NCBI RefSeq assembly: GCF_016432865.1
Contig: NC_067400.1
Location: forward strand, 31,558,001 to 31,622,000
Length of the DNA: 64,000 bases
DNA from: Antechinus flavipes
Taxonomy: Eukaryota
Reading direction: 5' to 3'
How positions within the stretch are numbered: the first letter of the stretch is position 1; every line of letters begins with the position of its first letter. Below the pieces are notes generated by a model. That model saw nothing but the letters and a program-made list of their open reading frames with translations. It searched no databases and was not told the origin of the DNA. This document shows, one piece after another, positions 15,487-39,636 of this stretch. The translations under genes and the position numbers were made by a program.

Positions 15487-15515
15487 TACTAATAATTTAT
15501 TTTCATTTTCTCTAG
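15487..15515 (+). promoter_or_regulatory. Branch point, polypyrimidine tract and 3' splice site of the first coding exon
   Basis: TACTAAT (15487-15493), T/C tract, TAG ending at 15515. Confidence 0.85.
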
Positions 15516-15824
15516 GATATCAACCTACTGCTAACTGGATTTGAGGGGAAACCAAAATAAATGGCTACTTTCCTTATACTGCTGCTATGGAAAATGGAAC
15601 ACCAGTGGCTGATGGGACATGGTTTGATAAAGAACATCAAGTAAAGATGTCTCAATAATTGTGAAATCAATGGAAGATCCTTGCTCTTTGAAAAGCTTTT
15701 TGAGATTATCCTGACAGGTTCTCCTGGAAACCTGAGGAAACATTCCTTCTTTATCTGTCTCATTTTTCACAGAGGATTATAAATACTATTACTTCCTTGT
15801 CAACTTCACACCTCATGTGGGACC
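15516..15824 (+). other. NLGN1: 5' UTR portion (309 nt) of the NLGN1 first coding exon
   Basis: Acceptor ttattttcattttctctAG|GATATC at 15515/15516 with a near-consensus branch point TACTAAT at 15487-15493. Gives an 802-nt exon, close to the ~813 nt recalled for human. Confidence 0.88.
15561..15714 (+). promoter_or_regulatory. uORF cluster in the NLGN1 leader: 15561-15644 (27 aa), 15587-15658 (23 aa), 15619-15627 (MV*), 15670-15714 (14 aa)
   Basis: ATG-to-stop frames read directly from the UTR. ATG 15587 has strong Kozak context (gctATGG). Actual translation is not shown. Confidence 0.6.
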
Positions 15825-15973
15825 ATGGCCCCGCCAAGATCCATGTGGCTGAACTGTGCATGGAAAGCAGGGATGACACATCTTGTACTCCGGGGATTGG
15901 ATGCCACACTGGCCCTCTGCATCTTTGGATGTTTGCTTCAGGCCTCTGCTGTATCCTCACAAAAGTTGGATGA
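15815..15973 (+). promoter_or_regulatory. Overlapping out-of-frame uORF (52 aa, [10 protein letters not shown]...TKVG*) starting 10 nt before the main ATG
   Basis: ctcATGT (weak Kozak) at 15815; stop TGA at 15971-15973. Confidence 0.5.
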
Positions 15974-16317
15974 TGCTGACCCACTGGTGACGACTAACTT
16001 TGGCAAAATAAGAGGGGTTAAAAAGGAACTCAATAATGAAATTCTGGGGCCTGTGATTCAGTTTCTTGGGGTTCCATATGCAGCTCCACCCACAGGGGAA
16101 CGCCGTTTTCAGCCTCCTGAACCTCCATCTTCTTGGTCAGACACCAGAAATGCCACTCAATTTGCTCCCGTTTGTCCACAGAACATTATCGATGGCAGGT
16201 TGCCAGAAGTCATGCTCCCCGTTTGGTTTACTAATAATTTGGATGTAGTTTCCTCCTACGTACAAGATCAGAGTGAAGACTGCCTCTACTTAAATATCTA
16301 TGTCCCAACAGAGGATG
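15825..16317 (+). CDS. NLGN1: Neuroligin-1, first coding exon (aa 1-164 plus 1 nt, phase 1): signal peptide and start of the cholinesterase-like domain
   Basis: Translation MAPPRSMW...[57 protein letters not shown]...[49 protein letters not shown] matches NLGN1 as recalled. Strong Kozak accATGG; 493 coding nt; donor G|GTGAGT at 16317/16318; N109 sequon (NAT), C117 and C153 present. The ORF-track extension to 16358 is intron read-through. Confidence 0.98.
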
Positions 16318-16443
16318 GTGAGTTAACTGAAGGAAAAAAAAAACAGCCACATCTTTAAAAATAAATATATATATATATATACATAATATATATTATTCTT
16401 ATTCTAAATTCTAACAATATTAATTCATGTATACTGGTAGCAA

Positions 16444-16760: not shown

Positions 16761-16818
16761 CTCCGAGAGTCTGTGATGGAGCTCCATGTTATTTTCTAGT
16801 CTTCTATTCATTTTTCAG

Positions 16819-16878
16819 TAAAAAGAATATCCAAGGAATGTACAAGAAAACCCGGCAAGAAAATTTGTAGAAAAGGAG
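16819..16878 (+). CDS. NLGN1: NLGN1 alternative cassette exon, splice insert A1 (VKRISKECTRKPGKKICRKG), 60 nt, phase 1-1
   Basis: Acceptor cttctattcatttttcAG at 16817-16818 and donor GAG|GTATGT at 16878/16879. In-frame translation matches the known A1 insert with its two cysteines. Too short for the ORF track. Confidence 0.96.
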
Positions 16879-18346
16879 GTATGTATAAAAGTGGAAACCA
16901 AAAACGGGGGAAAAAAGGCTTGGAGAGGAAGAACGAGATAACATATCCAAAGGATGATTTGCTGATATGCTGAAGTGAAAGGTTAGGCAATATCTTATAT
17001 TTAATGAAGCTCAAGAAGGAATTGAGAGTTGGTGAAAGAGGTGCCTAGTGGAGTATATAACTTCTATAAAGCATTATTCTCTCCCTCTTTGGTTCCCTGG
17101 TGATGATTGTAGGGGCAACATCCATATCTTGGCCTTGTGCTTGTTTCAAGGTTGCTGAACATATTTGTGCATTGGCAAAGAAGCAGAGAGGGAGATCTCC
17201 TAATGATGGAAAAATGTGTATTCTCTGGATATTTTCTCCACACAAGAGTACTAACCTTCCTGCGGCCTCTTTTTGTCCATTTATGGAAAAAAAAAATGAG
17301 TGAGAATGAATAGTCAGTTTTCTGTTTGCTCATAGTTTGCTCTTATGTAAACTTATGTTCCAAGGATAGTGAAATGTTCAAAACATTTTGCCATGGTAAT
17401 TTGGCCACTGCTGTTGTCAGGTAGTATTTTCCTTCAGACATTATTTAAATCTTGTTGTCAATTCCCAGCAGGAATGGAGATCTTGCAGATTTCGTCCCAA
17501 ACATTTGCAGATTTTCAAAATTACTCTAACACTTGTATATTTATGTTCAACAACTTAAAACATGGGAAATAACATGATTCAGAAGCTACAATTAAATCAA
17601 CCTTTAAAGCATCCTCTAGTTAGATTGTGCAAGTGGAGACATTCACAGCTGCAGGCTTGCTGAGACTTAATGTGTCTGAATGTGGCTTGTCCAGACAACA
17701 TTTTTTTAAAGCTTCCTATTCAGTATATCACCCATACGAGAGTCTGACCTGCTAGGGTGGGAGATACTTGATGTGATCACGTGATTTCAACCATAAGGGT
17801 GTAGAAATTTAAGCCAGCTTTGATATCCAGGCATTGGTGACTTGTGTTCTAGTTTTCGCTACTTCAGATCATATTTTATTATGAACAGTTTCAAGGACAG
17901 TTCAGATTATTGTGTTCTGCTGATCCACAACTGGATATTGGCCATATTTCCTCCAGACATTTCATCATAAAATTGGTATTTGCAGCAATGTGGTCCAACA
18001 TGTCTTTTCCCAATGGTACATGCAAATTGAATGGTGGCAGCATGGTACCATTGAAGAAGATAAGTATAGAAGAAACAGGAGTGTTTTGAATAACTAACAA
18101 CAAAGTGCTTCATTTCTTTCAAGTGAGAACAATTGAAATCATTTTCATGCCTTCTGGTGATGTACAACTCTGATATAGTTTTTAATCGTGTAGTTTATCA
18201 AGTATGTGTAATTAGCACAGCAATTTTTTCCTCCTATCACAGAAATGTTGATTCTCAGTCATAAGTAAAGATGTTGGTAAAGGATATATAACTATAAAAT
18301 ATATTATGCAAATATACATGCAGTTAAAATCAAGAAAGAGAGAAGA

Positions 18347-39342: not shown

Positions 39343-39476
39343 AATAATATTCCATTACTTTCATATACTATAACTTATTCTAATCCTAACCTTAATCCAC
39401 CTCTTGACTCTAACCACAATTGATGAGCATCTACTTATTTTTTTAATGCTTTGACATCATACAAAGAGCTGTTATA

Positions 39477-39636
39477 TATGTTTAACCTATATTGGATTAC
39501 TTGCTGTCTAGGGGAAGAGTTGGGAGGAGAGAGGGAGAAAAATTTCGAACACAAGGTTCAGTAAAGGTGAATATCAAAAACTATCTTTCCATGTACTTTG
39601 AAAATAAAAAAGCTACTATTATTATTATTATTTTTA
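39477..39636 (+). mobile_element. Intermediate-age L1 3' end nested in the older L1
   Basis: TSD aaagagctgttata / aaagagctgctaca (12/14); same subfamily as 430-632. Confidence 0.8.

Follow-up and report, generated by a model that had tools for sequence, protein, structure and literature searches.

The first coding exon of the neuroligin-1 gene (NLGN1) of Antechinus flavipes, located at positions 15516-16317 (+) of the 64,000-nt stretch analysed here (NCBI RefSeq assembly GCF_016432865.1, contig NC_067400.1, positions 31,558,001 to 31,622,000; hereafter the window), is the marsupial orthologue of the circNlgn exon, and its agreement with human in reading frame and stop appears to derive from a block constrained as RNA or DNA. 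We envisage that an ultraconserved block, with which the exon begins and which is ~40 nt long, would account for the frame and stop matching those of human, the 9-residue tail encoded across the back-splice junction being mainly a by-product of the block. This block would most likely be an exonic element for recognising or regulating the acceptor, in linear splicing, back-splicing or both, and most likely also a part of the translational control of the 5′UTR, beside a conserved upstream ORF (uORF). A circle, if formed, would contain an ORF of 173 codons with GYQPTANWI as its C-terminus.

The original prediction had read the same exon as the source of a circle-encoded protein, a counterpart of Nlgn173 that may predate the marsupial-eutherian split, with the caveat that splice-site or UTR constraint could explain the conservation as well. 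Its arithmetic (an 802-nt circle, 173 aa, stop at 15542-15544) was reproduced from the sequence in every number. Tail length and stop do predate the marsupial-eutherian split at the level of DNA, and extend to birds and an amphibian-like sequence and even to a teleost, where a 3-nt indel leaves the frame intact. The further step to a conserved circle-encoded protein was not supported, given that third positions are invariant, post-stop triplets are equally conserved and dN/dS is not significant, and the caveat turned out to be the better-supported reading.

Host exon and circular reading frame

The 164-aa body encoded by the exon matched PDB chains of Nlgn1 at ~1e-75 and those of NLGN2/3/4 at ~1e-50, and the constructs of mature Nlgn1 in the PDB begin at query residues 45-46. 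The Pfam COesterase profile was matched at 3.5e-34, covering profile positions 2-95 of 515 only. The top named relatives were neuroligin-1-like proteins of Notamacropus eugenii (96% identity) and Macrotis lagotis (95%). The PDB Nlgn1 matches and these marsupial relatives together identify the window as marsupial NLGN1, in agreement with the orthology originally proposed. The exon, which by its sequence is the first coding exon of that gene, aligned end to end with the NLGN1 exons of eight vertebrates (797-838 nt).

The homologous exon and its flanks were compared among the Antechinus window and eight further sources, namely the NCBI assemblies of Galeopterus variegatus, Marmota monax, Merops nubicus and Scleropages formosus and four Logan contigs placed by protein identity. 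The nearest relatives of these contigs were a phyllostomid bat for L001 (98.6%), a vole for L005 (99.3%), Merops for L006 (96.6%) and frogs for L007 (Spea, 86.6%).

In Antechinus the exon spans 802 nt (length mod 3 = 1), opens with GATATC and closes with GAGGATG, and comprises 309 nt of 5′UTR and the first 164 NLGN1 codons. The main ATG at 15825 stands in the context ACCATGG, which is kept in most tetrapod sequences, and the coding part (15825-16316, +) specifies a signal peptide and the start of the esterase-like domain, leaving the exon to end in phase 1 with the G at 16317. Upstream, the acceptor region of the intron (15487-15515, +) consists of a branch-point-like TACTAAT (15487-15493), a T-rich pyrimidine tract and an AG ending at 15515. 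These three elements are aligned across 8/8 tetrapod sequences, the marsupial acceptor region being fully intact, and Scleropages has a comparable TGCTAAT, pyrimidine tract and CAG. The donor gtgagt (16318-16323, +) forms part of a GGTGAGT that is invariant in 9/9 species.

Joining the donor side at 16317 to the acceptor side at 15516 creates a junction in which ...GAGGATG is followed by GATATCAACC..., and the frame runs on as GGA TAT CAA CCT ACT GCT AAC TGG ATT TGA, that is, GYQPTANWI and a stop. The tail and stop segment thus occupies 29 nt (15516-15544, +) within the ultraconserved exon-start block, is completed by the G at 16317, and yields a predicted circular ORF of 164 + 9 = 173 aa with its TGA at 15542-15544. 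The human junction peptide given in the original prediction, GYRPAANWI, agrees with the one that Xu et al. 2022 state in their Methods (PMC8956965). When eutherian sequences begin at the homologous AG, exactly this published peptide results, which validates the acceptor position predicted at 15516. Compared with it, the marsupial tail keeps 7/9 residues and carries Arg->Gln and Ala->Thr replacements, of which the former takes away the sole charged (basic) residue of the tail.

Judged by its sequence, the exon holds every prerequisite for a single-exon circle of the human type, since it combines splice sites that are strong and conserved on both sides, a start codon in a favourable context, an upstream intron of at least 15.5 kb and a GC-poor setting. 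The GC content of the window is 35.5%, and the parental genes of circRNAs are described as typically GC-poor in a previous study (PMC8516420). Since human and mouse make a circle from the homologous exon, and given how AUG exons behave in general, we consider it somewhat more likely than not that the circle exists in marsupials.

Very long flanking introns, above about 6.5 kb, are characteristic of AUG circRNAs. The upstream intron exceeds 15.5 kb, and the downstream intron would be only ~500 nt long if the splice-insert A1 exon is used. This exon of 20 codons (VKRISKEC...KICRKG) is placed at ~16818-16877 (+), with an extrapolated start ~500 nt past the donor; a tblastn search with Macrotis isoform X3 aligned residues 174-206 at 16845-16934 (16774-16843 masked). 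Beyond A1, no further NLGN1 exon was found in the remaining 47 kb of the window. The sole sizeable inverted-repeat pair across the flanking introns (449-586 versus 39472-39611, 141 nt, 82%), probably an interspersed repeat present twice in opposite orientations, is separated from the exon by 15 and 23 kb. With just one distant inverted pair, and A1 ~500 nt downstream, the exon may or may not circularise efficiently in this species. Pairing between the acceptor and donor regions was also computed with RNAduplex, which returned only long loose duplexes with no common register and was discarded as uninformative. As a separate observation, GCATG motifs, which we take to be the RBFOX-type core, are clustered between the first coding exon and A1 (16444, 16486, 16659 and 16756, +); clusters occur at similar offsets in all species (L001-L008), and the intron is conserved from amphibian to mammal.

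Conservation of the exon start across vertebrates

The back-splice frame and its stop were kept in 9/9 species. The tail GYRPAANWI followed by a stop, identical to the human peptide, was found in the bat-like L001, Marmota, Merops, the bird L006 and the amphibian-like L007. The colugo Galeopterus reads GYRPSANWI with the stop changed from TGA to TAA. The vole-like L005 reads EYRAMVNWI and a stop, with 4/9 residues replaced and the exon opening with AAT rather than GAT (L005:1134-1165), and the teleost Scleropages reads GSRPTQLSWI and a stop, a tail of 10 aa with a 3-nt in-frame insertion. The terminal WI and stop are invariant in 9/9 species and NWI in 8/8 tetrapods, and Arg is absent from the tail in the Antechinus window only among the nine sequences. 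By this comparison the marsupial tail ranks among those that have diverged more. As a side observation, an antibody raised against GYRPAANWI may miss the product in some rodents, given the vole-like EYRAMVNWI.

The same stretch stands out at the nucleotide level. In pairs drawn from marmot, bird and amphibian, the 30 nt of the tail are 97-100% identical, compared with 67-77% for the rest of the 5′UTR, 82-88% for CDS positions 1+2 and 54-64% for CDS position 3. Five slowly evolving taxa were scanned with 1476 sliding windows of 30 nt, which covered the exon together with 300 nt of the intron before it and 400 nt of the intron after it; the maximum was at the exon start, with 29/30 invariant columns, and no CDS-internal window exceeded 26/30. 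The first ~40 nt of the exon are the most conserved block of the locus, above the CDS itself. Bird and amphibian agree at each of the nine third positions, for which the chance probability, given the third-position identity of the CDS, is 0.004, and the identical tails from amphibian-like to eutherian sequences differ by one synonymous change (GCG/GCA). The nine bases TTTATAAGA after the stop are likewise invariant in marmot, bat, colugo, both birds and the amphibian-like sequence, and the columns that do vary across tetrapods are spread evenly over the three codon positions. Because third positions are unrelaxed and the post-stop bases are equally conserved, the conservation of the exon start looks like a constraint on RNA or DNA rather than on a peptide. 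This pattern points to an RNA element, and therefore the cross-species conservation of the tail, which is already known in the literature, is not evidence of peptide function.

In the marsupial the block is partly eroded, with 5/30 bases changed, the Arg->Gln replacement and 9 nt deleted after the stop. The nine missing bases (TTTATAAGA or the equivalent GATTTATAA), which the other seven tetrapods possess, would fall at 15544/15545, and the deletion lies between two GA dinucleotides and spares the TGA.

As to the form of the element, we infer an RNA-level function from the conservation pattern of the sequence. Speaking against such an element, only a weak consensus fold (-8 kcal/mol), lacking covariation, was predicted for the exon start, a 5-bp helix of the acceptor UCUAG with CUGGA is possible but weak, and a search of Rfam returned no family above threshold. 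A nematode C/D-box snoRNA hit further into the exon (15623-15694, +) reached 22 bits (E = 0.06), where the gathering score is 60, and was taken as chance.

Alternative accounts of the block

The block could instead serve the linear NLGN1 mRNA only, as the end of a uORF that begins in a more upstream 5′UTR exon or as a binding site for translation or localisation, with the circle absent or negligible in marsupials and its ORF purely formal. We regard this account as unlikely, although the 5′UTR is full of conserved upstream ATGs that speak for it. The first of these opens uORF 1 (15561-15644, +), 27 codons that begin MATFLILLLWK... and start 17 nt past the tail stop. In 9/9 species from teleost to mammals this ATG is kept, 17-26 nt beyond the tail stop, and opens 24-27 codons for a peptide of the M-A-x-L...LLWK type, which makes uORF 1 a candidate conserved-peptide uORF of NLGN1. 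Another ATG, 10 nt before the main ATG, opens an out-of-frame uORF of 52 codons (15815-15973, +) that overlaps the start of the CDS. This ATG (sequence ATGTGGGACCATGG) is kept in 8/8 tetrapod sequences, and the uORF likely dampens translation. All three frames of the ancestral sequence are moreover closed within 36 nt of the exon start, again as would suit a purely linear role.

Searches for products of the circle are also compatible with its absence. No protein ending in the circle tail was present among 192 related proteins, a search of low sensitivity. A 48-residue junction query of the protein collection scored 5 candidates, none spanning the tail, and junction patterns of the marsupial and bird/amphibian types gave 0 matches in metagenome contigs, where the search is insensitive. 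Against the restriction to linear mRNA stand the literature reports that human and mouse make the circle, and the finding that, of all exon classes, AUG exons flanked by long introns most frequently form circles and most often do so in common across species (PMC6487579). The negative searches are insensitive, with only those 5 candidates scored, and the upstream 5′UTR exon lies outside the window. The window contains no CpG island and no other long NLGN1 exon, the 15.5 kb upstream of the exon being free of both, and the lack of a CpG island implies that promoter and first exon are situated over 15.5 kb upstream.

In the portion of the opossum circRNA catalogue covered here (PMC8516420), whose tables are without gene names, no NLGN1 entry could be identified. 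Sequence from the whole exon or from a part of it occurs in 22 public sequencing runs, among them four total-RNA libraries of a related organism (41-42% of sampled words) and four runs of another organism (94-100%). Several observations on linear isoforms were made along with these searches. Short NLGN1 isoforms ending soon after ...NYRLGVLGKK/EK are annotated in marsupials, rodents, bats and a turtle (P0001, P0122, P0014, P0178 and others); past the third coding exon there may thus be either an alternative terminal exon that is conserved or read-through into the intron. The gene model P0009 (Microtus ochrogaster) runs on after ...YVPTED as GHQTCANTETSH..., unlike any other isoform. Three cluster members, P0162, P0166 and P0172, found in as many as 701 contigs with metagenomes among them, appear to be human.

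Somewhat less likely still is that the tail itself is under purifying selection, Nlgn173 being an ancient circle-encoded isoform since early tetrapods or bony vertebrates and GYQPTANWI a functional variant of it. The stop falls at the same codon in 8/8 tetrapods with a shift of one in-frame codon in the teleost, the TGA->TAA change of the colugo keeps the stop, and both the ubiquitous WI and stop and the tails that differ by a single synonymous change from amphibian-like to eutherian sequences would be expected under such selection. The protein has also been published for human and mouse material, with its nine residues called conserved (PMC8956965, PMC10741722). Conversely, a coding role is unneeded to explain third positions that are unrelaxed and post-stop bases that are equally conserved, and where the block has changed, replacements dominate (4/9 residues in the vole-like sequence, 2/9 in the marsupial, 5-6 in the teleost).

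The substitutions themselves show a trend short of significance. Read in the back-splice frame, those of the three changed mammalian lineages (marsupial, vole-like and colugo) amount to ~7 synonymous and ~9 non-synonymous changes. The dN/dS of this frame, put forward in the original prediction as a check, did come out lowest of the three (0.33 versus 0.79 and 0.61) but, resting on 16 substitutions, was not significantly below neutral; the excess of synonymous change reached P 0.08-0.28 depending on the expected synonymous fraction. When substitutions were simulated at random, the 9-aa length was retained in 48% of trials for the marsupial (five substitutions in 29 nt), 32% for the vole-like sequence and 63% for the colugo, so that joint retention in the three lineages has a chance probability of ~0.10. 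In the marsupial simulation at least 7/9 residues survived in 27% of trials, and the marsupial-human peptide match is therefore not in itself beyond chance.

The protein product adds further grounds for caution. A marsupial Nlgn173, as deduced from the sequence, is one that has lost the Arg and whose 164-aa body consists of a signal peptide and a small fragment of the esterase fold (positions 2-95 of 515). AUG circRNAs as a class, moreover, are without evidence of translation (PMC6487579). All the same, the retention of frame and stop in 9/9 species and the lowest dN/dS weigh against reading the tail purely as a by-product and may leave room for some peptide constraint.

Such room would be taken up by a block of dual purpose, in which the back-splice frame has been kept for more than 400 million years from teleosts (10 aa) to mammals (9 aa). 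A dual constraint on peptide and RNA element would equally give ultraconservation; we hold it to be slightly less probable again than selection on the tail as such. If it were true, Nlgn173 would be an ancient vertebrate isoform made only from circular RNA, with peptide and RNA constraints superimposed. That the marsupial lineage is free of constraint, the length and 7/9 match being a residue of ancestral similarity after neutral drift, is very improbable, for although 5/30 bases have changed, 9 nt of otherwise conserved post-stop bases are deleted and simulated drift retains the length in 48% and at least 7/9 residues in 27% of trials, the tail block still matches other tetrapods at 25/30 positions (83%) compared with 61-67% for the rest of its 5′UTR (binomial P ~0.02-0.04), and the acceptor region is fully intact.

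Relation to circNlgn and other AUG circRNAs

Whether functional proteins are encoded by circles is disputed, and Nlgn173 is among the cited examples. Vertebrate-wide peptide selection on the frame, if it were real, would be a rare case in which evolution speaks for a protein encoded by a circle. Sequences in which the peptide changes while frame and stop persist (marsupial, vole-like and colugo) are natural variants for separating the two kinds of constraint. circNlgn and Nlgn173 were reportedly first described by Du et al. (2021, Circ Res 129:568). Both the circle and the protein have been reported from human and mouse material (PMC8956965, PMC11342054), the nine tail residues arising from translation past the back-splice junction (PMC8956965), and a review credits the original authors with the earlier report that these residues are conserved between species (PMC10741722).

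The preferred reading, an RNA- or DNA-constrained block with the tail mainly as by-product, agrees with what is known of AUG circRNAs. Stagsted et al. (2019) described these as having conserved 5′UTRs and long flanking introns, with no preferential conservation of the stop over the next triplet and no relaxation of third positions (PMC6487579).

Compared with human circNlgn/Nlgn173, the marsupial locus has the same host gene, the same exon, homologous donor and acceptor sites, 164 + 9 codons and the stop at the same codon. It differs in its tail, GYQPTANWI, which matches the tetrapod ancestral form at 7/9 residues and 25/30 nt, in the 9 nt deleted after the stop and in its exon length of 802 nt; nuclear localisation and a cardiac or gut role would be hypothetical for a marsupial product. 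Like the AUG circRNAs circHIPK3, circSLC8A1 and circZNF609, the candidate circle would be made from a start-codon exon with a conserved 5′UTR, a very long upstream intron and few proximal inverted repeats; consistent with a class that does not depend on such repeats, one distant pair only was found here. Its ORF likewise crosses the junction into the 5′UTR and stops soon after, showing no third-position or stop-specific signature. Unlike other AUG circRNAs, its predicted downstream neighbour is a small alternative exon only ~500 nt away, and its first 40 nt are conserved above the CDS, which is unusual even for this class.
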